A DNA stretch of 64,000 nucleotides from sequence record NC_020077.1. One strand, 5' to 3'. Shown here in pieces: positions 1 through 52,453 of this stretch. Each line of letters starts with the position of its first letter. The first letter of the stretch is position 1. The position numbers and the translations under genes were made by a program. The notes beneath the pieces were generated by a model. It did no database searches and was not told the DNA's origin. It worked only from the letters and a program-made list of their open reading frames with translations.

Positions 1-1130
1 CTACCTTTTTCTTAGTCCTGCTATCCTCTTACGTTATACCACCCCTTTTTACGTAAATTTTACGTTTTCCCCTTATTTTGTATTAATAAAGTTTTTGGAA
101 AAATATTTCAAAGACAAATTTTATTTCAATTTTGATCAAAATTCGAATTGACGTGCCGACATTTTCATTTTTTTATACTTCTTCTTTTAAAATTTGGATT
201 AAAAGGAAAAACCTAACGTTAATTTAGGTAAATTTAGAGAAATTGTATTATTAATATTTCACTGAATTTAATTCTCGATTTCATGAGTGATTTCATAAAG
301 TATCTAATATACGATATTATTTCTATTCCTAATAAAAGTTTTTATGATATCAACTTTATATATTCATTTTGAATTTATATATTATCAATACGCTTTTCCT
401 ATTTTTTTATCAATACCTATAGTTTTTTGAATTCAAATAATAAAATTTTTGTGACATATAGTTATTTTCATAAATAATGATATATAGTTATTATTGAAAA
501 TAAGAATATCAATTATAAAAAGTTTTCATGATAATTATTATATCTATTTGATTTTGTAATTAATGATGATATCATTATTTCTAAAAATAGTTGATATAAT
601 AATTTTTATATTTAATTTTTTAAGTGAATAAGTTATAAAATTGTTTTCAAAAATTTTTACATTTTGTTTTTATAGTAATTATTATATCTAGTTTTTATTA
701 TAAATATATATAATTATGATATTATAATTTTTATAATAATTATTTTTTATTGTAAATATGATAATCATGAAATTAACTGATTTGAAAATATATCTCATTT
801 ATAATAAAAAATTCAAATTATATAATTTGAGTGAAATTGAAATTAAAATATGTATAAATGATAAAATTGAATTTTTATAATATCGATATTAAATTTTTTA
901 TCTTAACTTATATGAAAAAGTTTATATCAACTTAAATATGAAAATTCAATTTTCATATTTCAGATTATCAATATAGTTTCAATTTCACATATATTAAATA
1001 AATTCAAAGGTATAAATGTTATCAGATAAGTTTATACTTTTGTATTTATGTTTAATCATATCATTATCATGATATAAATAGTTTATAATATCACTTATTT
1101 TATAATGATAAATAAAAACTCGAAATTCCT
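1..1130. other. Very AT-rich non-coding region, candidate replication origin
   Basis: No ORF in the track; long A/T runs; perfect 16-bp palindrome AATTTTGATCAAAATT at 128-143; precedes about 35 kb of co-oriented plus-strand genes. Origin role is inference. Confidence 0.4.
1063..1121 (+). repeat. 59-bp upstream repeat, copy 1
   Basis: ATTATCATGATATAAATAGTTTATAATATCACTTATTTTATAATGATAAATAAAAACTC; recurs at 2388, 3450 and 4430. Confidence 0.9.
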
Positions 1131-1184
1131 ATCCCTTATTTACTTTCAAGTTAATCTAATGATCTATTGACTTAATCACGTAAA

Positions 1185-1208
1185 TTTCACGATGATAATA
1201 CCGTAAAT
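1185..1208 (+). promoter_or_regulatory. Class I operator palindrome, copy 1 (consensus TTTTACGG-N8-CCGTAAAA)
   Basis: TTTCACGA-TGATAATA-CCGTAAAT; TATA box TTTAAATA at 1222, 13 nt downstream. Confidence 0.8.
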
Positions 1209-1263
1209 GATTAGAAAAAGATTTAAATATCCCTTTTCATAAAAGATATATTAGGAGTAAAAT

Positions 1264-1749
1264 ATGGCCGCACCCGAATTAGAAAACCCCGCCCAGAATA
1301 ATGCGGGGGAAAATTCGAATGAAGTAAATCTTGAAGAAATAATAAAAATAATATACGAAATGCGTAAAATCAGGGAGACGCTAGAACAATTAAAGCAAGA
1401 AGATCTTAATAGCGTTAAAAAACTAATTGTAAAAATTGATAATCAAGTAAAAAAATTAAAACAATTAATTGATGAGCGTGATGATTTACCAGTCATGAAA
1501 ATGGATATTAGCAGTTTAGCTAATTTAACGCAAACTTTAGTTAATAAAATTGTTAATCAAGAAATTAAAATAGAAACTTTATTTTTATTAATTACAGATT
1601 TAGTAAAATTAGTAACTGAAATAAAAACTAAACTAGAAATTAAATACAATATCGATATGAGCGCGGAAGAGATATACAAACTAGCAAGAGATATAGCATA
1701 CGACGTGGATGATTTTATATATTTCTTATATTCTTATTTAAATAATTAA
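1264..1749 (+). CDS. Hypothetical coiled-coil protein with shared N-terminal leader
   Basis: 161 aa; GGAG RBS; heptad-like L/I/K/E pattern; leader MAAPELENPAQNNAG. Confidence 0.75.
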   Translation: MAAPELENPAQNNAGENSNEVNLEEIIKIIYEMRKIRETLEQLKQEDLNSVKKLIVKIDNQVKKLKQLIDERDDLPVMKMDISSLANLTQTLVNKIVNQEIKIETLFLLITDLVKLVTEIKTKLEIKYNIDMSAEEIYKLARDIAYDVDDFIYFLYSYLNN

Positions 1750-1750
1750 A

Positions 1751-1803
1751 CTTTTTTTTTATTTTTGTTTTATACTTTTTCTAAACTTTTTATTATGTTA
1801 TTT
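1751..1803 (+). terminator. T-rich terminator-like repeat, also at about 2984-3041
   Basis: TTTTATTTTTGTTTTATACTTTTTCTAAACTTTTTATT follows both ORF1264 and ORF2589. Confidence 0.6.
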
Positions 1804-1825
1804 TAATTTTATTATGTTATTATAA

Positions 1826-2300
1826 TGTAATGCCGCCCGGCCATTATATCATTATTATATATTGTAATTTTGCCGCAGGCCCATCGCCGCATTTTACATT
1901 ATTATTATATTATACGGGCCCGCCGCCCCGCCATTATTCATTATATAATATTATAATTGCCGCCCCCGCCGCCTATAATTCATTATAATAATATATAATA
2001 ATGAATATGCCGCCGCCTAATCATTATTATAATGTAATGCTGGCCCGCCGCATTTAACATATATTATAATATAATAATGAATATGCCGCAGGCCGGCCCA
2101 TTATTCATTATTATATTATAATTGCCGCAGGCCTTTATCATTATTATAATAATGCCGCCGCCGGCCTGCCGCCGCATTAATCATTATATTATAATAATAA
2201 AATGTATAACTAATATTCATTATTATATATTATATATTGAATATGCCGCCGCGCCTATGCCGCAGGCCCGCCGCCGCCCTAATTACATTATTATAATATA
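1826..2300 (+). repeat. AT/GC mosaic satellite, block 1
   Basis: About 10 GC-rich islands (GCCGC, GCCGCAGGCC) separated by nearly pure A/T spacers such as CATTATTATAAT. Confidence 0.85.
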
Positions 2301-2387
2301 ATGAATAACTAATCTACAATATTCATTATATCAATTATAAAATTACATATATACACTTAATTCTTTTACTTATACTTTTTGTATAAT

Positions 2388-2446
2388 ATTATCATGATAT
2401 AAATAGTTTATAATATCACTTATTCTATAATGATAAATAAAAACTC
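2388..2446 (+). repeat. 59-bp upstream repeat, copy 2
   Basis: One mismatch to copy 1. Confidence 0.9.
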
Positions 2447-2509
2447 AAATCTAGTATTGATTTGAATTCCCTTAATTCTTTTAATTTACGCTATTGATAA
2501 TCACGTAAA

Positions 2510-2533
2510 CTTTACGGTGATAATACCGTTAAT
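2510..2533 (+). promoter_or_regulatory. Class I operator, copy 2
   Basis: CTTTACGG-TGATAATA-CCGTTAAT; TTTAAATA at 2547. Confidence 0.85.
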
Positions 2534-2588
2534 CATTAACAAAAGCTTTAAATACCCCTTTTCATAAATAGGTATTTAGGGGTAAAAA

Positions 2589-2981
2589 ATGGCCGCACAA
2601 CCCTTAACTCAAATCCCCGCGTCAAATGCGGGGGTAAAAGTTGATGAATTTTTTGATGAAAAAGAATTAATTAAAATCGCGAGCAGATTAGGGCCTGTAC
2701 AGAAAAAAGTACTAAAAGCACTAGCGCAGAGCGGCGGGAAAATGATGATGCAACATGACTTTAGGACCTGGGGGCAAAAAACTATAGCAGGCATCGTGGG
2801 CGGCGTAAATGCGGAATACCGCGCCTTAAACACGAGAAAACTATGCGAAGCGCTGGAGAGGAAGGGGCTAGTGACAATAACGATTGAAAAATGCCCTAAC
2901 CACCCTAAATATAATAAAAAATTTGTATATTTAACACCAAAAGGATATAAAATAGTAGAAATAATTTCTCAAAACGAATAA
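2589..2981 (+). CDS. Winged helix-turn-helix (MarR-like) protein with shared leader
   Basis: LGPVQKKVLKAL ... LCEALERKGLV ... FVYLTPKG pattern is typical of wHTH proteins. Confidence 0.7.
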   Translation: MAAQPLTQIPASNAGVKVDEFFDEKELIKIASRLGPVQKKVLKALAQSGGKMMMQHDFRTWGQKTIAGIVGGVNAEYRALNTRKLCEALERKGLVTITIEKCPNHPKYNKKFVYLTPKGYKIVEIISQNE

Positions 2982-3044
2982 AGTTTTTTTTTTAATTTTA
3001 TTTTTGTTTTATACTTTTTCTAAACTTTTTATTTTGTTATTATA

Positions 3045-3330
3045 CTTATGCCGCCGGCCGCCTTTATCATTATTATATTATAATATAATGATAATGGCCG
3101 CGCCCCCGCCGCCGGCCTGCCGCCGCACTTTACATTATATATAATATGCCGCCGGCCTTTATCATTATTATTTATTATATATAATGTATAACTAATATTC
3201 ATCATTATTATAATATGCCGCAGGCCCGCCGCCGCCCTAATTACATTATTATAATAATATATGCCGCAGGCCGGCATTTAATTATTATAATATATGCCGC
3301 GCCTATGCCGCCATCGCCGCACTTAACATT
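3045..3330 (+). repeat. AT/GC mosaic satellite, block 2
   Basis: Shares blocks with block 1, e.g. ATGCCGCAGGCCCGCCGCCGCCCTAATTACATTATTATAAT and AATGTATAACTAATATTCAT. Confidence 0.85.
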
Positions 3331-3449
3331 ATTATAATGAATATAATAATTAATAATTAATATACATTATATATTATATTTTATAAATATGATAAATACG
3401 CGTTTTACCCCCTAATACTTATACTTTTGTAAATTACTTTATGCATATC

Positions 3450-3508
3450 ATTATCATGATATAAATAGTTTATAACTACATTTATTCTATAATGATAAAT
3501 AAAAACTC
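3450..3508 (+). repeat. 59-bp upstream repeat, copy 3
   Basis: About 4 mismatches to copy 2. Confidence 0.9.
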
Positions 3509-3581
3509 AAATCTAGTATTGATTTGAATTCCCTTAACTATTTCAATTCACTCTATTGATTCATTTCCTTAACTACGTAAA

Positions 3582-3605
3582 TTTTACGGTAATAATGCCG
3601 TAAAA
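3582..3605 (+). promoter_or_regulatory. Class I operator, copy 3 (perfect arms)
   Basis: TTTTACGG-TAATAATG-CCGTAAAA; TTTAAATA at 3619. Confidence 0.9.
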
Positions 3606-3662
3606 GTTAAACAAAAGATTTAAATACCTCTTTTTACTAAAATTATACTTGAGGGTTAAGAA

Positions 3663-4103
3663 ATGGCCGCACCCCTTAACCCAACCCCCGCGGCAAATGC
3701 GGGGGATAAAATTGAAAAAATAAAACAAATCGCAAAAATAATATATCCATATATATATACTAGCGATAATGAATTTAGCGAAACGGATGCAGAAGATTTA
3801 GAAAGAGAGTTACAATATTTACCAAAAATTATAAACTTATTGGAATGGGCATTAAAGAATGTAAATAAGGTCGAAATAAGCGCAAGTGATGAGTTAAAGT
3901 TTTACGATAAAAAAACGGGCTATGCATTGTATATAACGTTAGCTAAAGGGCGCGGAGCGCAAACGGAAGTAGTAGTTTACCCTGACGCAAATACGATATA
4001 CGTTTTAGTATTTAAAGCGCCCGTATTGAAAATATTGAAAAGGGCTAAAAAGGCACTAGAGGATGCGCTAAAAAGATATACAAAAGCGCAACAAATCTTA
4101 TAA
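3663..4103 (+). CDS. Hypothetical protein with shared leader
   Basis: 146 aa; GAGGG RBS; leader MAAPLNPTPAANAG. Confidence 0.75.
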   Translation: MAAPLNPTPAANAGDKIEKIKQIAKIIYPYIYTSDNEFSETDAEDLERELQYLPKIINLLEWALKNVNKVEISASDELKFYDKKTGYALYITLAKGRGAQTEVVVYPDANTIYVLVFKAPVLKILKRAKKALEDALKRYTKAQQIL

Positions 4104-4124
4104 GATATAACATTTTTTTATTTA

Positions 4125-4350
4125 ATATATGCCGCAGGCCGCGGCATAAACAAACAAATAGTTATAAAAATACCGCCGCTTGCGGCCCGGCGGCGGGCGG
4201 GTTAACAAAAACAAATAATTGATAAACAAATACCGCCCGCCGGCTTATTCTTTTATTTATTAGTTATATAATATTATTATCCCATTTTTTAATGCGCTTT
4301 TATCCCCCATTTTTTATATACTTTAATTATGAATATGCCGCAGGCCGCCC
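4125..4350 (+). repeat. AT/GC mosaic satellite, block 3 (degenerate)
   Basis: AATATGCCGCAGGCC twice; GC hairpin CCGCCG-N9-CGGCGG. Confidence 0.7.
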
Positions 4351-4429
4351 TTTACATTGTATAATATAATGAATAATGCGCTTAATCCCCCGTTTTACTT
4401 ATACTTTTGTATTTAAATTTAAGTATAAC

Positions 4430-4488
4430 GTTATACTGATATAATCACTTTATAACTACATTTATTTTATAATGATTAATAAAAACTC
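4430..4488 (+). repeat. 59-bp upstream repeat, copy 4 (degenerate)
   Basis: 3' half TTTATAACTACATTTATTTTATAATGATTAATAAAAACTC is conserved. Confidence 0.8.
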
Positions 4489-4550
4489 AAAACTACTATT
4501 GGCCAAATCGCCCTTAACTATTTCAATTAGTATATTGATAATCACGTAAA

Positions 4551-4574
4551 TTTCACGGGGATAATGCCGTAAAA
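4551..4574 (+). promoter_or_regulatory. Class I operator, copy 4
   Basis: TTTCACGG-GGATAATG-CCGTAAAA; TTTAAATA at 4588. Confidence 0.85.
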
Positions 4575-4628
4575 AAGGACAGAAAGCTTTAAATACTTCT
4601 TTTAACAAAAGTATATTTGTGGGTAAAA

Positions 4629-5564
4629 ATGTCACAACCCCTAAACCAAACCCCTGCCCAAATGGAGGGGGAAATTAAAAAACAACACATAAAAATATAC
4701 GAGTTTACAAAACAATTGAAAGGGCTAGTAATTGAAAGAGTAAAGTCAAAGCTAGGAGTTATTATTAATGATAATACAGAAGAAATTAATGAATTAATAG
4801 ATATTAATACTGAAGAACTAACGGACACTATAACTAAGTACATAGTACTATTACAAGATCACGTGGAGGATTACGAGACCTGGAGATGGGTTGAGCCAGT
4901 GGATCACCTATTATATTTATCTCAAATGAAGGCAAAACTTGAAGTAAATACTATATTAAGCAAAAATGAAACGAGAAAGGTAAGGCAGAAATTAGCTAAA
5001 TTAGAAGAAAAGATATATAAAACTATAGGCTTAATATATGCCGTAATTTGTAGTGAGAAAAGCGGCAGATTAAATATAATACAGGAGATAATTAATAATA
5101 ACGTAGAGACACGTTTTAACAACGTTATTAGCGATATTGACGCGTTATTAACCAAGCTAGAAAATGTAAATATAAGTGATGAAGCTACAAAAATGCTTAT
5201 TAATAATATAATTAGCACAGCTAAGCAACTTAAAGAAGAAGTAGTAAAGTTAAGAAGTGAAGGAGTAAAAATAGCAAGTATTAACGAAATAGTACTATTT
5301 ATAAAGAAGCTTAACGAATTATTAGCACAAAGCGCATTAATTTCTACTCTAGCTAATTTGATTTACGTAAAAGATAAACAGGTATATGAGCAGTTATTTG
5401 GGCAGCGAAGTTTACTGAATTCGGCGGACAATGCTTATCACTCTTTATTTAAAGTTTTAAAAGATATTAGTAGCAGTTATATTGAAGGATATGAACATAT
5501 AAAGCAAGCTTGCGCAGATAAAACATACGCAGAATATTACACAACAGTATGCAGTGATGAATGA
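4629..5564 (+). CDS. Hypothetical all-alpha protein with shared leader (start moved to ATG 4629)
   Basis: GTGGGT RBS before the ATG; leader MSQPLNQTPAQMEG. Confidence 0.8.
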   Translation: MSQPLNQTPAQMEGEIKKQHIKIYEFTKQLKGLVIERVKSKLGVIINDNTEEINELIDINTEELTDTITKYIVLLQDHVEDYETWRWVEPVDHLLYLSQMKAKLEVNTILSKNETRKVRQKLAKLEEKIYKTIGLIYAVICSEKSGRLNIIQEIINNNVETRFNNVISDIDALLTKLENVNISDEATKMLINNIISTAKQLKEEVVKLRSEGVKIASINEIVLFIKKLNELLAQSALISTLANLIYVKDKQVYEQLFGQRSLLNSADNAYHSLFKVLKDISSSYIEGYEHIKQACADKTYAEYYTTVCSDE

Positions 5565-5923
5565 TGAAAGAAATGAAAAAAGAAGTAAAACTACTTAAAA
5601 AATTAGATAAACAAGCATTTAAGATAGTACTATTATTATATAAAGCAGAGCCTGGTAATCAAAAGCGGCGTGAACTATTGTCGCACTATTATAACGCGCA
5701 TTTAGCTGTAATGCATAGTGACGAGCTTATTTGTAAAAAAATATACGATAACTTATTTATTTACAGCGTTCTGGGGAACGTTATAAAAGCGTTAGAAGGG
5801 GCACTATACTATGCTAACGATATACAAAATTATCATGCGGAGATATTAGCAAAAATTCTAAAGGAAATGTTAGACATTTTACAAAAAATACAAACAATAA
5901 AACTAGAGATTATCGCGGAATAA
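5561..5923 (+). CDS. Hypothetical helical protein
   Basis: 120 aa; ATGA overlap with the upstream stop suggests translational coupling. Confidence 0.7.
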   Translation: MMKEMKKEVKLLKKLDKQAFKIVLLLYKAEPGNQKRRELLSHYYNAHLAVMHSDELICKKIYDNLFIYSVLGNVIKALEGALYYANDIQNYHAEILAKILKEMLDILQKIQTIKLEIIAE

Positions 5924-6058
5924 CGCGTTACTTTAGTAGCAGATTTTTACATGCTTATTTTTTACATTCTTATGCTTTTTGATACGAAATTATTTATAAT
6001 CTATTAATATAATACTGACCTTAATTTAGACAGGGGATTTCTGCCCTTAACGCCCTTA

Positions 6059-6082
6059 TTTTACGGCTATATTACCGTAAAA
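6059..6082 (+). promoter_or_regulatory. Class I operator, copy 5 (perfect arms)
   Basis: TTTTACGG-CTATATTA-CCGTAAAA; TTTAAATA at 6096. Confidence 0.9.
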
Positions 6083-6143
6083 ATCGAGAGAAAGCTTTAA
6101 ATATCTCTTTTACTAATATATAATTAGGGGGTGAAAATCAAAA

Positions 6144-6689
6144 ATGATCGAACCTTTACGTGAATTATTTAAACATTTTAAGGAAGAAAGTGAAAAAATA
6201 AGGGAAGAGTTGGCAAGGGAGAGCGAAGAAGTTAACGTACTGATGAAAACTGATGATGAAAAAATTAAAGAAAAAATAACAGAATTATACAATACAATTG
6301 TTACGCAGGACGCATTACAGCCTGGCTTAACTAAGCTGTATGATACAATAATTGATTATGCGAGGCAACTTGACGATAAAAAGGCGTCATTTATACTTAA
6401 CGCGTTTCACAATAAAATTTACATTACGAAAGCAGATATACAAGAAACGCTAAAGGAAATGTATAATGTCGTTAATGGCAAAACGAAAAAGAAGGATAGC
6501 AAAAACGAGTTATTAATGTTGACTATTAACTTGTTTAAACATTATGCGGCGATGAAATCGCTAACGTTAATTTTATGCGACATTAAAGACTTACGCGAGA
6601 GTGAAGCCTGCAGAATTAACGCGGAGAGTAATAATAAGCTAAAGGATAATATACAGTATTTGCTAGATTTATTGCTGCACAAAAGTTAA
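6144..6689 (+). CDS. Helical protein, paralog of ORF6710
   Basis: IKEKITELYN ... TLKEMYNVVNGK ... LTINLFKHY aligns with ORF6710. Confidence 0.8.
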   Translation: MIEPLRELFKHFKEESEKIREELARESEEVNVLMKTDDEKIKEKITELYNTIVTQDALQPGLTKLYDTIIDYARQLDDKKASFILNAFHNKIYITKADIQETLKEMYNVVNGKTKKKDSKNELLMLTINLFKHYAAMKSLTLILCDIKDLRESEACRINAESNNKLKDNIQYLLDLLLHKS

Positions 6690-6709
6690 ATTTAATTAGG
6701 TGGGTCAAA

Positions 6710-7267
6710 ATGTCTGATCCCATAAATCAAATGATTGAATATCTTGAGCAGGAAATAAGAGGAATGCAAGAGAGGCGAAAACAAGAAGAGAAAGAAGAAC
6801 GTAAAAGAATAAGGCAAGAGAGGCAGGAAGAAATTAAAGAAAAAATAACGAAATTGTATAATATAATTGTAAAAGAAGATTTACTAGGAGTCAATTTAAA
6901 TAAGCTGTATAATGTAGTTGAAGACTACGCTAAAGAGATTGATAGTGAGACGGCAAGTAAAGCGTTTATGAATCTGATAGCGGCGATGGAAACTGCGCGA
7001 GAGAATATGCAAAAAACGCTAAAGGAAATGTATGATATTGCGAATGGTAAAAAGAAGAATAGCAAAAATAAACTATTAGTACTAACTATTAACTTGTTTA
7101 AGCAGTATGGCATAATAAGGGCATTATATGATTCCCTGGACCGTTTTAGCAAAATACGCAAAAGTGAGGTTTATAATGATACGGGAGATAAAAGCCTGAG
7201 GACGTTGTTACATATCACACTAAATAGTAGTTTAAAGTTCTTGCTAGAGTTACTAATCGAAAGGTAA
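6710..7267 (+). CDS. Helical protein, paralog of ORF6144
   Basis: IKEKITKLYN ... TLKEMYDIANGK ... LTINLFKQY; GGTGG RBS. Confidence 0.8.
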   Translation: MSDPINQMIEYLEQEIRGMQERRKQEEKEERKRIRQERQEEIKEKITKLYNIIVKEDLLGVNLNKLYNVVEDYAKEIDSETASKAFMNLIAAMETARENMQKTLKEMYDIANGKKKNSKNKLLVLTINLFKQYGIIRALYDSLDRFSKIRKSEVYNDTGDKSLRTLLHITLNSSLKFLLELLIER

Positions 7268-7461
7268 GGAGGTGAGAGAATGGAAGGGGGTTTCAGTCAC
7301 AAATATGTTAACACCTGCTTATGAGGCATTAATTGTGGACTCGGCCCCTTACTTTATGCTTTTTTGGTTCGGTTTCTATATTATGGTTATGTAATTATTC
7401 TTAACTTATTTCCATAATATCTGACGATTTTTAGGAAATGGTTTGTCTTTTTATGACCTTA

Positions 7462-7485
7462 TTTTACGGGGATACTACCGTGAAA
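7462..7485 (+). promoter_or_regulatory. Class I operator, copy 6
   Basis: TTTTACGG-GGATACTA-CCGTGAAA; TTTAAATA at 7499. Confidence 0.85.
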
Positions 7486-7538
7486 AAGGACAGAAAACTT
7501 TAAATACATCTTTTACTAATATTTAATTGTGGGTAAAA

Positions 7539-8492
7539 ATGTCACAACCCCTAAACCAAACCCCCGCTCCACAAGATGCGGGGGATAAATTGGATGAATT
7601 AAAAGAAAAAATAAAAGAATATATAGAAGATTTGGAAGATCTATCACATGAGTACGACCTACCCGATTTCGCTGCTGATGACTTGCGCGCAGAGCTAGAA
7701 TACATAAGTAAAGAAGCAAATAACGCAGATCTGGCAAAAAGCGTTAAAGAAGTAGTAGAATTAATGGCAAATGCGCTAGATGAGCAAGTAGAGAAAGCGC
7801 TAGAGAATGGCAAGGCATTACGGAACTCTTATGATAATAACAAAATTAGCGATATGTTTAAGAGCGCAGTAAAAATTTACGCAAACTTAAAAACAATAAA
7901 TACAATAGTAGAATATCTAAAGCAATATGTTAAGGTATTAGGCATTACGGAGGCAAATTTAGAAAGGTTTACACAAGAGGCTGGAAGCATTATAGCTATA
8001 CTAGCAAATCACATAGCGCAACATGTTAAACTTAGCGAAGACGATGCAAGAGATTTAGAAAACGACCTGATATATTACCACGATCTAGCAGAAAACTGGA
8101 CTGATATTGAGGATGCTCTTGAGGAAATTGAGTATGATTTAGAAAACGACACAGAGTTTAAGCGTGGAACGTATAAGGCCTTGATGAAGGTTTTGAATGC
8201 AATGCGGGAGCACCATGATAAAGGAGTAGGTTATGGGAACGGCGCGGATGAAATAGTATATGACGCATACGATTCGGACGAAGATGAATATAAGCCTGAC
8301 GAAATAGACACGGAAACACTATTACTAAACCTGGCGGAAACTTACGCACACTTTATAGCACTACAAGCACTTTACGACAACATAATGAGCGAGTATATAA
8401 GTAATGAAAAATTAGAAGATGCAACGAAAAAAGCAATAAATAGGGCAAAAGATGCACAAGAAATCATTTTAAGCAGCTATAATAGCAACTAA
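7539..8492 (+). CDS. Acidic helical protein, paralog family with 8718 and 12468 (start moved to ATG 7539)
   Basis: Leader MSQPLNQTPAPQDAG; motifs AVKIYANL and LAETYAHFIALQALYD. Confidence 0.85.
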   Translation: MSQPLNQTPAPQDAGDKLDELKEKIKEYIEDLEDLSHEYDLPDFAADDLRAELEYISKEANNADLAKSVKEVVELMANALDEQVEKALENGKALRNSYDNNKISDMFKSAVKIYANLKTINTIVEYLKQYVKVLGITEANLERFTQEAGSIIAILANHIAQHVKLSEDDARDLENDLIYYHDLAENWTDIEDALEEIEYDLENDTEFKRGTYKALMKVLNAMREHHDKGVGYGNGADEIVYDAYDSDEDEYKPDEIDTETLLLNLAETYAHFIALQALYDNIMSEYISNEKLEDATKKAINRAKDAQEIILSSYNSN

Positions 8493-8636
8493 ACGTTTTT
8501 TCTTTTTTAGTACCCTTTTTAAAGTTTTTATTGTTAATATTATAACGGCCTACTACTTAACATATCATTATTTTTAAATTAGGGCCATGATAGTTTACGG
8601 TTTTTAGCTAAGGGATTCTGGCCTTTAACGCCCTTA

Positions 8637-8660
8637 TTTTACGGGGATACTGCCGTTAAA
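8637..8660 (+). promoter_or_regulatory. Class I operator, copy 7
   Basis: TTTTACGG-GGATACTG-CCGTTAAA; TTTAAATA at 8674. Confidence 0.85.
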
Positions 8661-8717
8661 AATGAGAGAAAACTTTAAATACCTCTTTTACCTATAGTTA
8701 TATTGAGGGTGAAAAAA

Positions 8718-9617
8718 ATGTCTCAACCCTTAAATCAAACCCCTGCCCCAGCCGCGGGGGCAAATCCAGATAAATTAAGAGAAAAAATAGGAAAATATAT
8801 AAAAGATTTAGAAGATCTGAAGCTGGGTTATGATATAAACGATATACAAGAAGAGATAGAAGAAAGTTACAGTATAACGAAGGGCGTTAAAGAGGCACTA
8901 AAAGTAACATATGTTATCTTAACGGACTACTATAATGACGCCAAGGAAAAAAGCAAGTTGCTAAGTGATGCGTATAATAAAAATGCAATTAAAAGCATGT
9001 TTGATAATGCTATAGAGCTTTATGCAGATTTAGCAGCAACTAATGCATTATTAAGATTAATGCGCTCGTTTAAGATAGAGCCCGAACCGACGCTCACAAC
9101 GCCCTTATTTATAGATTTTACTAGTAAGGCCAAAGACACAGTAATACTATTAATAGGCAGGTACGTAAAGGACGTTAAAAAAGATGATCGGAAAACAGTA
9201 ATTAATAAAATAACTGAAGAGCTAAGCTGGACTATTTCGTATCAAAACAAACTCGAAAGTGACTTCAAAGAATATGAAGAAGAATTTGAAGAGAAAGATG
9301 ATATATCAGCAGGAGAATACAAGGTTCTAAAGAGAGCGCTAAAGTTAATAAAATATTATTACTTGTCTGGAATAAGACTCATAAAAGAAACTAGAGCGAT
9401 GATAAAGCGAGATGGCAAAAATGTTAACATGAGAAAAATAGCCTGGAAATTGACAGAAACGTATGCCACGATGACTATACCATTGGCGCTATACGATATT
9501 TTATGTAGCGACAAATACGACATATGCTATAAATGGTGTGATTATGCCTTGCTATTCCCTACCAAGGATGTTAAAGATGCGATAGAGGTGATTAAGGAGA
9601 ATGCGCTAGGAGACTAA
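8718..9617 (+). CDS. Helical protein, paralog family with 7539 and 12468 (start moved to ATG 8718)
   Basis: Leader MSQPLNQTPAPAAG; motifs AIELYADL and LTETYATMTIPLALYDILC. Confidence 0.85.
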   Translation: MSQPLNQTPAPAAGANPDKLREKIGKYIKDLEDLKLGYDINDIQEEIEESYSITKGVKEALKVTYVILTDYYNDAKEKSKLLSDAYNKNAIKSMFDNAIELYADLAATNALLRLMRSFKIEPEPTLTTPLFIDFTSKAKDTVILLIGRYVKDVKKDDRKTVINKITEELSWTISYQNKLESDFKEYEEEFEEKDDISAGEYKVLKRALKLIKYYYLSGIRLIKETRAMIKRDGKNVNMRKIAWKLTETYATMTIPLALYDILCSDKYDICYKWCDYALLFPTKDVKDAIEVIKENALGD

Positions 9618-9632
9618 ATATTTTTAAGTTTT

Positions 9633-11882
9633 TTGTTTTATAACTTTAGTGAAAAGACAGTGTACGCCATTAGACGCAATCGCATAGAAAGCCAAGATTA
9701 TATTAGGCTGATCGAAACGGATAAATTTCCATCTGGCCTGATTAACGAGGCCTCAGCCAGAGAAAAAAGTAGGGGTGGAATGCCACCAATATGGGAAATG
9801 GTTTTTTGGTGGACTAGGAAACCCTTAATAGGGGCTAGAGCAATTATCGCAGCCTCACTACTGCCAGAGTCTGTCGATAAAAGCAAGTTTTTGCGCTTGA
9901 TTAGGCTAGATAGTAATGGATCGGTTGTTTACCATAAATATAATCCAGCTGATATACCCTCGTTAAAGAAGTACTTTAAAAATGCTAAGCTTTTAGACCC
10001 TTTTGCGGGCTTTGGTTCAATACCTTTAGAAGCTATACGGCTAGGCGTAGGGGAAGTTGTGGCCTCTGACCTTTTGCCTACGGCCTACATTTTCCTTAAA
10101 GCCATTTTGGAAATACCTAAATGGGCCAGAGATAATGACCTTCATGAGACACTTATTAAAGATGTTGAGAAATGGGGCAATTGGATAATAGATGAGTTAA
10201 GAAAGGATCCAGAAATTCAGGAACTGTACGATGATGATGCTGATGGTTACATTGGTACATGGGAAATAAGATGCCCACATTGTGGTAATTATACACCGCT
10301 AGTAGGGAGTTGGTGGTTAGCGAGAAAGGTAAATGGGAAAAGAAATAAGAAAGAGAAGGACAATTTTAAAAGACTTGCCTGGATGGTTCCAATTATCGTT
10401 AATAATAAGGTTGATATAGATGTAATTGACCTTAATAAAGAATTATCTAGAGATAAAATAAATGCTAAAGTTGACGCTGGACAAGGGCTTATAGAAGTTT
10501 ATAAAGAAGTAAACGGGATACTTCAGCTTGAAAAAACGTATCAGGTGCAGCAAGCTAACGTAGACATAAAAAGAAATACTGCAAAATGCTTAGTATGCAA
10601 TACTACGATAAAAGGGGGGAGACAATTTTATGTTAAGGATGCGGTGAGGGATTGGAATGAAAACTTAGAAAAATACTTAGCAGGGGAGATAAGTAAAGAG
10701 CAATTATTAAATAGTAAGGCAAGGCCAAGGATAATAGTCAAAATAAAAAAGGGCATAGTTTTTGAGAAGGTAGAAGATCAAGAGAAGTTATGGAAGGCTT
10801 TAGAGATGCTTAAACAAATATGGGGAGATCTTGATATACCTACGGAGCTCGCGCAGAATTATGAAAGTCGTCATATGCCTACTAATTTTGGTGTCGATAA
10901 ATTTTTCAAATTCTTTAACCCACGCCAGCTTTTAACTGCTGTTAAGGTTGTTAAATTACTACGTGAGGTTGGGAAGAGAGTTGAGGAAGAGAAATTAAAA
11001 GTATGGAATAAAGATAAGGCGAGGAAATACGCTGAAGCAATAGTTACTTATTTAACAATGTTATTAGTTAAATATATGTATTATAGTTCGATCGGGACCG
11101 CCTGGGACGCTACTACTGTTAAAAGTTTTGATAGTTTCTCGATGCGTGGACTAAGGGTGATGTGGAATTGGGTAGATATTACTCCTTACAGTAAGCTGAG
11201 CGGATCTTTTGTGAAATCACTGCGCAGTGTATTAAGAGGCCTTCAATACCTTGTTGACGCAATTTCGGACAGCCCTACCAGAGTTAGGGTTTTGTTGGAT
11301 GACGCTACTAAACTAAATAAGATTACAGAGGACTTCGATTTAATAGTTACTGACCCACCATACTGGGATGATGTTGCTTATACAGAGCTTAGTGATTTAT
11401 ATTATGTATGGTTAAAAAGGGCTTTAAGTGATGTTAAGGAAGTTAATGGGGTTTTAATGAGGGTTCCTAAATTTTATCCAGAGGCATTCTTTGATAATGC
11501 TGGGAATGAAATAGAAACTCAATGGAAGAAATTTGCAATTAGAGAAATTAGCAAGTATAGGGGAAGAGTTAAGTACTTTTATAAAAATGGTAATGCTTCT
11601 GAGCATTTAAAATGGTTATTGTCAGAAGCTTTTAAGACAATTGCAGATAGACTAAAGGAAAATGGAATTTTAGTAACGTATTACGCTCACACAATTCCAG
11701 AAGCCTGGAATGCATTTCTAGAAGCTGGCTGGAGTAAGGCAGGTTTAAAGATAACTAAAACGCATTTATTTGTAACAGAATCCAAAACGCGAATTACGGC
11801 GCAAGACAAAATTACAGTAAATACTTCGTTGGTCATAATATGGCGCAAGAGAAAGACGATGGAGAAACTTTTAAAAACATAA
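9633..11882 (+). CDS. DUF1156/COG1743-type adenine-specific DNA methyltransferase with Zn ribbon
   Basis: N-terminal RLIE ... EASAREK ... FWWTRKPL; motif I DPFAGFGSIPLEA; CPHC and CLVC; motif IV TDPPY. Start codon uncertain. Confidence 0.9.
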   Translation: MFYNFSEKTVYAIRRNRIESQDYIRLIETDKFPSGLINEASAREKSRGGMPPIWEMVFWWTRKPLIGARAIIAASLLPESVDKSKFLRLIRLDSNGSVVYHKYNPADIPSLKKYFKNAKLLDPFAGFGSIPLEAIRLGVGEVVASDLLPTAYIFLKAILEIPKWARDNDLHETLIKDVEKWGNWIIDELRKDPEIQELYDDDADGYIGTWEIRCPHCGNYTPLVGSWWLARKVNGKRNKKEKDNFKRLAWMVPIIVNNKVDIDVIDLNKELSRDKINAKVDAGQGLIEVYKEVNGILQLEKTYQVQQANVDIKRNTAKCLVCNTTIKGGRQFYVKDAVRDWNENLEKYLAGEISKEQLLNSKARPRIIVKIKKGIVFEKVEDQEKLWKALEMLKQIWGDLDIPTELAQNYESRHMPTNFGVDKFFKFFNPRQLLTAVKVVKLLREVGKRVEEEKLKVWNKDKARKYAEAIVTYLTMLLVKYMYYSSIGTAWDATTVKSFDSFSMRGLRVMWNWVDITPYSKLSGSFVKSLRSVLRGLQYLVDAISDSPTRVRVLLDDATKLNKITEDFDLIVTDPPYWDDVAYTELSDLYYVWLKRALSDVKEVNGVLMRVPKFYPEAFFDNAGNEIETQWKKFAIREISKYRGRVKYFYKNGNASEHLKWLLSEAFKTIADRLKENGILVTYYAHTIPEAWNAFLEAGWSKAGLKITKTHLFVTESKTRITAQDKITVNTSLVIIWRKRKTMEKLLKT

Positions 11883-50124: not shown

Positions 50125-50967
50125 CTACAAGTGGACTGGTATGAGATGCTGTCCGGCTAGCAGTAAAATTATAATCAATATACCAGCGCCTAACATTACA
50201 AATGTAAGTATACTCTGCCATCTTTGTGAAGATTGCATTAATCTTAATTTCTCAATTCTTTGCGCTATTTTCGACCATTCTCTAATATCATTTCCAATAG
50301 CGACTAATGTCCTCGTCATTGCTGTTGTGGCATCTATAGGGAAGGCTAACATTTCATCCGTTATAACAGTTTTAGGATCAACAGTGAATGCGAAAGCGTA
50401 ATTATTAGCAATTGGAATATAACCAGCTATTTCCTTATTTGTTGTAATTATATCAACTATAACATCAAGGATAGTCTTTTTCCCAGTAGCAGCCTTGAGG
50501 AGATCTAGCTTTGCAATAGTGCCAAAATCGAATGCAGAAAACATAGGTATATCACCAACAGCAAAATAAACTGGCTTATTGTAGTTCTTTACACCAAACC
50601 TATAAGGCCTAGCGTATGGACTAACGAGAATTAAGTATAACGCGCCATTTTCAGTAGCATGAAGAAGACCTTGCCTAACATATCTCGCCGGCAAAATCTT
50701 TAATTCATCAAGTTTAGAGTTGATTAAAACAACAATAGCATCAGCGTTTTTATGGTTAACTGAAAGGTAAGGTATTCTATTTGTAGAACGAGAGATAATA
50801 ATAGCAATAAAAGCAATTGCAAGAGTTGCGACAAGAATTATTGGCAGCAAGTTCGCTAAGTTAGCAAATAGTGGAGGTGCTTGAATAGAAATATGAGAAC
50901 TTGTTGCTGCTGGCGGTGGGGCTACAGTACTAGATGTAGAAGGTGGTGGAGTAGGAGATGCTGTCAT
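50125..50967 (-). CDS. Membrane protein with N- and C-terminal TM helices (start moved to ATG 50967)
   Basis: P/S/T-rich N-terminus, two TM segments; TTTAAATA promoter upstream. Confidence 0.75.
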   Translation of the reverse strand: MTASPTPPPSTSSTVAPPPAATSSHISIQAPPLFANLANLLPIILVATLAIAFIAIIISRSTNRIPYLSVNHKNADAIVVLINSKLDELKILPARYVRQGLLHATENGALYLILVSPYARPYRFGVKNYNKPVYFAVGDIPMFSAFDFGTIAKLDLLKAATGKKTILDVIVDIITTNKEIAGYIPIANNYAFAFTVDPKTVITDEMLAFPIDATTAMTRTLVAIGNDIREWSKIAQRIEKLRLMQSSQRWQSILTFVMLGAGILIIILLLAGQHLIPVHL

Positions 50968-51014
50968 TCTATATATATTTAAACTACTTATATTTAAAAA
51001 TACATTATACCTTG

Positions 51015-51135
51015 TCACCCCACAGTTAGGAGGGGGTGTTGAGCCTCAACCTTACGATTCACTGTGGTTACCAACCACTCCACGTGAGGGTCATGGGCCC
51101 CCTTCGAGCCCCAAGGCATGAGGCTCACATCTAAT
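51015..51135 (-). ncRNA. Candidate omega-RNA scaffold overlapping the tnpB 3' end
   Basis: GC-rich hairpin series GAGCC/GGCTC, GTGGTT/AACCAC, GTTGAG/CTCAAC, CACCCC/GGGGTG; the location is typical for TnpB omega-RNA. Confidence 0.55.
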
Positions 51136-52268
51136 TTTTTAGCTATATTCCACGCTGCTATAACGTCCCTATCATGCGTAAAGCCACACTTCTTGCATTT
51201 TAGAACCCTAGGTTGCCAGCCTCTCCTCTGGGCATTGTTTGTCATAATATTTAGGCTAGAACCACACTTAGGGCATGTCCTAGAGGTATTTTTAGGGTTT
51301 ACAAATTCCACTTTTATACCGTATTCTAATGCCTTTTCTGTAATACGTTTCTGTATTCCTCTTATTGCTGATTGTTTAAGTCTATGTGCATCAAATGATT
51401 TAAGTCCATCTTTCTTAAGCGCCTTATCCTGGAAATTTTTAGGAAGCTTTTCCAATACAAGAGCAGCATTCTCCTTCTTAACTATCTTTGCTACGAAAGA
51501 AGCAACCTTATCTCTCAGTGCTTTTTTAACACTCTTCTCTCTTAACTTTCTTAAAGCAATACGAAGTGATCTCTTATCATGCGCATGTCTTTCCTGGATA
51601 GATTTTCTTCTGTATGCATAGCCTAACACTACCTTACTGTGATTAGTTACGAGTGTGATTGCTTTATGGTCTGGTAGTGTGAAGAGTGTCACATTATTCT
51701 CATTCACATCAATGCCAATTACTCTGTTGTAGTTTGTGTTTGGTTCGACGGTTTTACGAAAAAATACATATAACGTCAGCTTTCTGTCTTCGATTTTCCA
51801 TCTACAAGAGTCTCTAAGAGTCCAGCCGCCATTGTAGTGTATGTAAAACTGTTTGTGGAAAAGTAATGGTATTCTTATCCATCCCTTGTGGGTAGAGATT
51901 TCAACGCCTTGGAAAGACAGTTTCCAAGACATATTGCCACAGCTGACAGTCCATTGTTTAACTTCTGGTTTTTCAGTGTAAGCAAGGCCTTTCTTTTTCA
52001 GCTTTCTGAAGGATTCCAGTCTAGATGCTGCATCGCGTATTGCCTGTTGAACATATTGTGATGGTAAGTCTGGGTACTTCTCTCTAAAGTACTTGTATAA
52101 TTCTTTAATCCCTCTTAGCCAAGATGTTGTGCCTTTTTGATACATTACATTTACTGCTTCTTTTACCATTTCACCATATACCTTATAAACATAAGAAAGA
52201 GCTTCGGCCTTTTTTGCCGTTAGCCTTAGTGAGACAAGTTCAACCGTTTTTGTAACCTTTTCGCTCAT
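51015..52268 (-). CDS. tnpB: TnpB RNA-guided nuclease
   Basis: RuvC-I GIDVN, RuvC-II VLEKL, Zn finger TSRTCPKCG ... CKKCG, RuvC-III DRDVIAAWNI; ATG after GGTGGT. Confidence 0.95.
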   Translation of the reverse strand: MSEKVTKTVELVSLRLTAKKAEALSYVYKVYGEMVKEAVNVMYQKGTTSWLRGIKELYKYFREKYPDLPSQYVQQAIRDAASRLESFRKLKKKGLAYTEKPEVKQWTVSCGNMSWKLSFQGVEISTHKGWIRIPLLFHKQFYIHYNGGWTLRDSCRWKIEDRKLTLYVFFRKTVEPNTNYNRVIGIDVNENNVTLFTLPDHKAITLVTNHSKVVLGYAYRRKSIQERHAHDKRSLRIALRKLREKSVKKALRDKVASFVAKIVKKENAALVLEKLPKNFQDKALKKDGLKSFDAHRLKQSAIRGIQKRITEKALEYGIKVEFVNPKNTSRTCPKCGSSLNIMTNNAQRRGWQPRVLKCKKCGFTHDRDVIAAWNIAKKLDVSLMPWGSKGAHDPHVEWLVTTVNRKVEAQHPLLTVG

Positions 52269-52453
52269 TACGTACCACCAACCCCTCCCTGGAATCACCA
52301 GGCATTGGGGGCTATCATAAGCAGCGAAGTGAAAATTAATAAACTTTACTTTTTATCTCGTAAGCCAGGTATGAATAAAAACCCTTCTCCAAAACTGGAG
52401 AATTGTAATGACAGTTCTGCAAATTTGGTAAAAAAACAGTTAAAATAAATCTT

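Follow-up and report, generated by a model that had tools for sequence, protein, structure and literature searches.

A C-run/G-run hairpin in the first codons of STSV2 early-gene cassettes as a candidate RNA element of STSV-like viruses

Introduction

In archaeal viruses, a strong shared promoter motif combining the B recognition element (BRE) with the TATA box has been used for predicting anti-defence genes (Nat Commun 2024, PMC11065993). The Supplementary Data of that study list, as ADG.81-89, the genes STSV2_01, 02, 03, 04, 08, 09 and 06 of the virus STSV2 together with the open reading frame (ORF) at 74076; both the shared promoters of these genes and their anti-defence prediction are already published. 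The leader cassettes described below are the same genes with the same promoters. However, the published analysis dealt solely with the 100 bp upstream of start codons, and its motif excludes the leader in the coding region, the C/A-rich tract and the hairpin that a run of C forms with a run of G. It also covers SMV2, where promoters are shared but no such hairpin is present. Here we analyze this hairpin in a 64,000-nt window of the STSV2 genome, in which six genes begin with the leader, and in related viruses. We read the leader, with somewhat more confidence than doubt, as mainly an RNA element: a cis-acting mRNA hairpin at the downstream end of the STSV-like early-gene expression cassette.

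Among described RNA elements, the closest in placement are nut/boxB of lambda and put of HK022, short RNA hairpins with GC stems that lie just downstream of early promoters and act in cis on the transcript or the polymerase. The boxB loop is conserved and is read by the N protein, whereas STSV loops span 5-25 nt and are free in sequence, so that they do not qualify as boxB; moreover, an operon has a single nut or put site, which is not within coding sequence, unlike the STSV leaders. We know of no archaeal antitermination system of the nut/put kind. On the side of translation, CA-rich enhancers are represented by the CA-repeat enhancers in E. coli and by the omega sequence of tobacco mosaic virus (TMV), and a hairpin downstream of a start codon is said, after work by Kozak in 1990, to aid the use of that codon. 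The STSV leaders have in common with these an unstructured C/A stretch past the start and, a short and constant distance downstream, a stable stem. Those systems are eukaryotic, bacterial or engineered, with the stem at about +14 as against about +22 in STSV, and the analogy is functional only.

Results and discussion

A common cassette and hairpin at six STSV2 genes

The window corresponds to bases 1-64000 of STSV2 (JQ287645/NC_020077, 76,107 bp) with 100% identity. Its positions 1264-9617 hold nine genes on one strand, all annotated as hypothetical, and six of them (STSV2_01, 02, 03, 04, 08 and 09; coordinates in Table 1) carry the leader. Alignment of the regions from -260 to +70 of these six revealed a common cassette consisting of a palindrome, a BRE/TATA promoter, a site resembling a Shine-Dalgarno (SD) sequence, the ATG, about 15 codons and the hairpin. 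The palindrome, TTTACGG-N8-CCGTAAA, is followed after 14 nt by AAAGM-TTTAAATA (BRE/TATA), and about 33 nt past this come the purine-rich SD-like site and the ATG, with its roughly 15 common codons. Seven cassettes in all have TTTAAATA after AAAGM together with the palindrome, at a constant spacing of 14 nt; a strong BRE/TATA promoter is thereby common to several single genes of one virus, as in the early/anti-defence gene cassettes of PMC11065993. The usual geometry of Sulfolobus promoters would place the transcription start about 10-14 nt 5' of the ATG. Four public RNA sequencing runs from one study of 2015 contain about two thirds of the words sampled from 1000-9700, and the region is therefore transcribed.

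The stems of the six hairpins start 23, 26, 22, 22, 22 and 22 nt after the ATG (for STSV2_09 counted from the ATG at 8718), and their folding energies at 37 °C run from -10.6 to -16.8 kcal/mol. An original prediction, made from the letters of the window, had described six peptides and six stems, each of which we found at the position it gave (Table 1). It had also called the stems covarying, which is too strong a word for six copies, and had taken CCCCT/AGGGG of STSV2_04 for a compensatory change; that stem is in fact a register shift and not an in-register compensatory pair.

In the window, CCCC-N4-20-GGGG matched 11 times, against 1.1 ± 1.2 in dinucleotide shuffles, none of which (0/100) reached 11. 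These matches fall at eight distinct places, namely the six gene starts (with an alternative register in the sixth leader), 2555 and 51018. Over the whole 76 kb genome, seven of the nine sense-strand C4+..G4+ pairs lie within the six leaders. No Rfam family matched at the hairpins (cmscan, E<=1, window 1-3340 and 3400-9700); elsewhere the program returned chance-level matches only (YenS, Plasmodium snoRNAs), far under their gathering scores.

Copies in related viruses

Further leaders are present in STSV1 and in contigs of STSV3 and STSV4, and homologues of the STSV2_08 protein led to 12 additional contigs of STSV-like viruses (L055-L066). In some of the latter, the cargo proteins are just 46-57% identical, and the leaders start with GTG and are of the type VENTPQxQTP..G. 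A covariance model trained on 22 copies and run against 207 kb of STSV1-4 and related contigs found 45 copies, every one on the sense strand at the start of a cassette gene and none elsewhere. Promoter-pattern scans of three big collections brought nothing new (STSV1 and chance matches among viral contigs, chance matches among metagenomes and genomes), and SMV2, a Sulfolobus tailed spindle virus with shared early promoters of its own, had no copy and no C4..G4 pair in 50 kb. Judged from these sequences, the hairpin element is confined to the STSV-like lineage. The records of L055-L066 sit in assemblies labelled Micrarchaeaceae, Parvarchaeota, Thermoplasmata, Conexivisphaerales, Metallosphaera and Saccharolobus; they are probably STSV-like viral contigs mis-binned into unrelated archaeal metagenome-assembled genomes.

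The original prediction had held that selection acts on nucleic-acid structure rather than on the peptide. The evidence of the window alone would be insufficient for this; the 45 copies in related viruses are decisive, and with them the claim is supported by the register of the G-run, a C-run kept in three reading frames, rare codons, a few compensatory changes and an asymmetry between the stem arms, all detailed below. The same copies bear on the simplest alternative, that the element has no function and the 5' ends are alike only because they descend from recent duplications. Clear paralogy of the cassettes and their common promoters are in line with this. Yet the element persists where cargo proteins are only 46-57% identical and where the loop has fully diverged, synonymous and flanking sites are fixed, and the pattern counts are far above those of shuffles; we consider the absence of function very improbable.

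According to another explanation, promoter and leader form a homology patch for the in-frame exchange of cargo, the hairpin being a hotspot of template switching without a role in expression and the two runs the last conserved islands. Some support comes from the clear reassortment of promoter-leader modules and cargo. Two STSV3 genes, at 7516 and 4184, are 95% identical upstream and in the leader through CCCCGC and then continue into unrelated cargo, while STSV2_04 and its STSV3 orthologue have cargo 94% alike and differ upstream and in the first leader codons. The hypervariable loop between flanks that are 91-96% identical would fit as well. However, the breakpoint of one pair follows the C-run while that of another precedes it by about 10 nt, unlike a site-specific signal, and these reassortment breakpoints near the hairpin, with no single fixed point, weaken the recombination signal named as an alternative in the original prediction. 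Homogenization would conserve whole tracts and not a lone G5 island in a hypervariable stretch, and it leaves unexplained the complementarity, the compensatory changes and the fixation of third and first codon positions across eight flanking residues. Integron attC sites offer a likeness, in that gene cassettes are arrayed there too, each with an inverted repeat that is imperfect and variable at its center, and relatives exchange cargo. They stand, however, at the 3' end of promoterless cassettes, are cut by IntI at a fixed point and contain R/L boxes with extrahelical bases, whereas the STSV repeat is in the 5' coding region, each cassette has its own promoter and breakpoints differ between pairs. 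The only integrase annotation is an SSV-type "possible integrase" in STSV1; there is no IntI. A recombination junction is a quite unlikely account of the hairpin, although the two roles, in recombination and in expression, are not exclusive.

Constraint on nucleotides rather than on the peptide

In 21 of the first 22 leaders, the G-run has the register NNG-GGG-GNN. The residue preceding the Gly in these 22 takes eight identities (A, T, K, Q, S, E, M or P); the position after the Gly is restricted to A, D, V or E, which all have G-initial codons. The C-run occupies frames 1, 2 and 0 in 13, 6 and 3 copies, respectively, and so encodes TP, IP, NP, PL or PP. The codons used in the runs are rare across STSV2: the share of CCC among Pro codons is 6%, of GGG among Gly codons 13.8%, of GCG among Ala codons 13.9% and of ACC among Thr codons 7.2%. 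One metagenomic copy has a Pro-to-Ser change (CCUCCGC) in which pairing is retained as U.G. Between +4 and the last C of the C-run, the leaders consist of 36% A, 46% C, 7% G and 11% T; leaderless cassette genes have 19% C and 15% G. The distance from start codon to C-run is 22 nt in 21 of 44 copies and 21-25 nt in 39, and the loop that follows has no conserved sequence and is hypervariable even among copies with flanks 91-96% identical.

Register, frames and rare codons, along with the folding at 75 °C described below, amount to nucleotide conservation beyond what the protein needs, and on these comparisons the constraint on the leader is on nucleotides and not on the peptide. Since a C/A-rich, G-poor tract encodes residues such as Q, T, P and N, the peptide M-x-x-P-x-x-Q-T-P ... 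G would be largely a by-product of the conserved nucleotides.

This disfavors the peptide sorting tag that the original prediction had kept as its alternative, in which the N-terminal 14-20 residues would be a signal for sorting, packaging, processing or modification and the hairpin incidental. A tag would account for a leader that fronts unrelated protein bodies, for the near invariance of its Pro and Gly and for the Gln before the C-run, which is kept with synonymous CAA/CAG variation. It would not account for the chemically unlike residues that flank Gly and Pro while the codon positions extending the runs remain G or C, for a C-run that persists through frame changes altering the peptide (QTP, QPL, QPP, ESPP), for the pairing retained in the Pro-to-Ser change or for rare codons throughout. 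The major capsid protein has no leader, and paralogues with the same cargo exist without one (STSV1 ORF5). The likeness to Sec, Tat and class III signal peptides is that of a short N-terminal extension common to unrelated proteins. By inspection, however, the leaders have no charged n-region, hydrophobic core, twin-arginine motif or prepilin-like site; they are polar, rich in Pro, Gln, Thr and Ala, and lead straight into charged helical sequence. We therefore hold a peptide tag to be improbable. An N-glycosylation sequon (NQT), considered as a further candidate, is found in some leaders only and was rejected.

Folding and covariation

For the first 75 nt of the leader genes, the folding energy predicted at 75 °C is -2 to -8 kcal/mol, whereas synonymously recoded versions reach -0.1 to -2.8 kcal/mol (mean z -4.3, median p 0.007). 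For comparison, 53 other STSV2 gene starts average -0.27 kcal/mol, and the 5th percentile of internal coding windows is -2.4 kcal/mol. The pairing probability of C-run with G-run is 0.9-1.0 in most mRNA contexts. At 37 °C the contrast with recodings was gone (mean z about -1), as that temperature does not discriminate, about -10 kcal/mol being usual there for any RNA of 75 nt.

When 44 distinct copies were aligned to the model, 93.4% of cells were paired, as against 44-71% with a slid partner. Double-sided changes were found in three of seven pairs, with 5 cells versus 1.2 expected (2 of 500 shuffles), and the covariation score was 0.125 versus 0.104 (1 of 500 shuffles), so that compensatory substitution is modestly supported on these copies. 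At one pair, the series runs from C-G through U.G (STSV2_09) to U-A (L056, L059), and at another from G-C through G.U (L058) to A-U (L064, STSV1 ORF10). Stem variants include CCUC/GAGG in L055 and L060, CCCCUGC/GCAGGGG where relatives show U.G or C-G, and CCCCCAC/GUGGGGG and CCCCCGC/GUGGGGG in place of G-C.

The arms differ in how they vary, with 17 C->U changes in the 5' arm and five G->A changes in the 3' arm, three of which face U, and G.U cells outnumber A.C cells by 16 to 4. Both the asymmetry and the G.U excess fit pairing on the sense strand. They bear on the possibility that the element acts as DNA, either as inverted G-tract sites (the C-run and the G-run) for a monomeric protein preferring GC-rich double-stranded DNA (dsDNA), or as a hairpin in single-stranded DNA (ssDNA) of the coding strand. 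In the first case, a protein such as one of those with a single C2H2 zinc finger in these viruses might form a roadblock downstream of the promoter; in the second, the hairpin might be a priming or processing signal in ssDNA replication. In AT-rich DNA directly downstream of strong promoters, the hairpins stand out as GC islands, and sense and antisense fold with similar energies. Viral zinc fingers of suitable preference exist: single fingers of archaeal viruses favor dsDNA rich in GC, and one or two are said to be encoded by STSV1 (PMC3541406). Monomeric sites would also tolerate variable spacing, and ssDNA hairpins would tolerate G.T. For dsDNA sites, however, symmetric variation of the arms would be expected in place of 17 C->T and five G->A changes, the latter mostly facing T, and compensatory changes are meaningless for independent sites. 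The fixed distance from the start codon despite frame shifts of the C-run points to mRNA or ribosome instead. The sequence evidence is compatible with the ssDNA version; overall, we judge a DNA-level element unlikely.

Several observations weigh against the RNA hairpin. Extrapolation to 75 °C makes the energy parameters rough, and sense and antisense hairpins have the lower energy equally often (11 of 22 each way), so that energy alone cannot pick the strand. The first 22 copies, which come from STSV1-4, gave no covariation above that of shuffles; that seen with 44 copies amounts to about four independent events, in an alignment that the model itself fitted to the structure. Deamination of the coding strand could be a partial source of the C->U excess. 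The element, though carried by most cassettes with the early promoter, is not obligatory, since STSV2_06 and STSV1 ORF2 have the same promoter without it, and the copy L066:2475 has kept the C-run and is missing the G-run. Finally, in silico removal of the G-run gave a predicted accessibility of SD and AUG of 0.757 versus 0.722 at 75 °C, and changing either run to A shifted the predicted accessibility of -12..+3 by about 0.03. With accessibility nearly the same, these predictions give no clear support to SD sequestration or a simple insulator mechanism.

Proposed function and significance

Support for the hairpin comes from sequence that is conserved as nucleotides, from the ability of its arms to pair, from the location of all copies on the sense strand where cassette genes begin, and from covariation, which is modest. 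In the cassette as we propose it, a palindromic operator and a strong BRE/TATA would be followed by a predicted 5' untranslated region (UTR) of about 10-14 nt with an SD site and by the start codon. Next would come about 20 nt that are rich in C/A and poor in G, and then a C-run of 4-7 C, whose partner would be a G-run (usually GGGGG) beyond a freely variable loop. The resulting GC clamp within an AT-rich mRNA is predicted to be still folded at the host's 75-80 °C. Starting about 22 nt past the start codon, the clamp would lie, going by general footprint sizes, just beyond the initiating ribosome. It would act in cis on the mRNA, and its most likely role would be to standardize translation initiation or early elongation for any cargo gene; an effect on mRNA stability or a site for protein binding seems less likely.

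Two other uses of the runs were considered and rejected. Pairing of the first C-tract with the SD (GGGUG/CACCC) is possible in some groups and absent in the MVEN/MAEN leaders, and for the G-run as an SD of a downstream start, the downstream ATG/TTG codons are inconsistently in frame.

It is conceivable, though doubtful, that the hairpin with its conserved CAAA and A-rich flanks serves as a common handle on all STSV-like early mRNAs. A viral or host factor, the RNA polymerase or the ribosome would then read the hairpin and switch the early gene set, which is putatively anti-defence, at the post-transcriptional level. Such a switch would be an archaeal counterpart of T4 RegA, lambda N/nut and HK022 put, and to our knowledge no system similar to these is known in archaeal viruses.

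No report of a coding-region hairpin with a C/A tract was found in the literature searched, which did not extend to the genome papers of STSV1 (2005) and STSV2 (2014). Known cis-acting RNA elements of archaeal viruses are very few, and little is understood of how viral mRNAs with short leaders and SD sites are handled by Sulfolobus ribosomes at 75-80 °C. The present element is compact and repeated, is located on genes currently predicted to be the early anti-defence set of the virus and comes with about 45 natural variants that include compensatory mutants and loss variants. As the STSV2 host S. islandicus REY15A is genetically tractable, it is directly testable. The copies L055:4704 and L060:4609, which have lost both homopolymer runs together and are left with a weak CCUC[UCAG]GAGG stem, are, with L066:2475, natural variants suited to function tests. 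The leaders also call for caution, in that "conserved N-terminal motifs" of viral protein families can arise as side effects of RNA constraint, and the cassette could provide a portable expression module for Sulfolobus genetics.

Other features of the region

Table 1. Leaders, palindromes and TATA boxes of the STSV2 cassettes (positions in the window)
Feature	Position	Strand	Details	Energy at 37 °C (kcal/mol)
STSV2_01 leader	1264-1309	+	ATG, C/A-rich tract, C-run 1287-1290 (+GC), loop, G-run 1305-1309; stem CCCCGC/GCGGGG 1287-1308; -4.4 kcal/mol at 75 °C	-11.6
STSV2_02 leader	2589-2634	+	C-run 2615-2618 (+GC), G-run 2630-2634; stem CCCCGC/GCGGGG 2615-2633, extendable to 10 bp with two G.U pairs; z -3.8	-16.0
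STSV2_03 leader	3663-3705	+	C-run 3685-3689 (+GC), G-run 3701-3705; stem CCCCCGC/GCGGGGG 3685-3705, 7-8 bp; -7.9 kcal/mol at 75 °C	-16.8
STSV2_04 leader	4629-4671	+	C-run 4651-4654 then T, G-run 4667-4671; stem CCCCU/AGGGG 4651-4670; z -0.6, weakest of the six	-10.6
STSV2_08 leader	7539-7584	+	C-run 7561-7565 (+GC), G-run 7580-7584; stem CCCCCGC/GCGGGGG 7561-7584; z -4.1	-16.1
STSV2_09 leader	8718-8760	+	C-run 8740-8743 then TGC, G-run 8756-8760; 7-bp stem CCCCTGC/GCGGGGG 8740-8760 with one U.G; alternative stem UGCCCC/GGGGCA at 8744-8762	-13.0
Palindromic operator-like site	1186-1207	+	imperfect, TTCACG-N..-CCGTAAA; upstream of STSV2_01 promoter; alignment	
Palindrome TTTACGG-N8-CCGTNAA	2511-2532		regex positions and alignment	
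Palindrome TTTACGG-N8-CCGTNAA	3583-3604		regex positions and alignment	
Palindrome, imperfect copy	4552-4573		alignment	
Palindrome TTTACGG-N8-CCGTNAA	6060-6081		regex positions and alignment	
Palindrome TTTACGG-N8-CCGTNAA	7463-7484		regex positions and alignment	
Palindrome TTTACGG-N8-CCGTNAA	8638-8659		regex positions and alignment	
TATA box TTTAAATA, cassette 1	1222-1229	+	alignment, pattern positions	
TATA box	2547-2554		alignment, pattern positions	
TATA box	3619-3626		alignment, pattern positions	
TATA box	4588-4595		alignment, pattern positions	
TATA box of cassette without leader	6096-6103		alignment, pattern positions	
TATA box	7499-7506		alignment, pattern positions	
TATA box	8674-8681		alignment, pattern positions	

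The two imperfect palindromes were unmatched by the regular expression, and their coordinates were derived from the 14-nt spacing. In its form, the palindrome looks like an operator for a dimeric regulator. The pattern TTTACGG-N8-CCGTNAA also occurs in STSV1 and STSV3 cassettes and before the leaderless STSV2_06. At -110 to -90 of the starts 7539 and 8718, 5' of the palindrome, lies a conserved block, TTTTAGG-N4-6-GGTTCT, which these two STSV2 cassettes share with most cassettes of STSV1 and STSV3.

For the cargo proteins, Pfam and PHROGs gave a weak match to transcription regulators for STSV2_02 alone and no other informative function. The spacers of the first cassettes (about 1826-2300, 3040-3340 and 4120-4380) contain pure-GC islands of 10-25 nt, e.g. 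GCCGCAGGCCCGCCGCCGCC, embedded in AT repeats like ATTATTATAAT and lying directly 3' of the T-rich ends of the genes; similar GC islands are found behind STSV1 ORF4 and ORF6. The sole other C-run/G-run pair outside the cassette region, at 51018-51036 (CCCCACAGTTAGGAGGGGG), has no match to the covariance model and falls where two ORFs of the minus strand (50125-51018 and 51015-52298) meet.

STSV2_07 (6710) follows STSV2_06 without a cassette promoter of its own in STSV2, while in three related contigs (L056:3578, L059:4725 and L063:707) the gene has a full operator/TATA cassette. Its N-terminus, MSDPINQ, resembles the first half of the leader, minus the C-run and the G-run.

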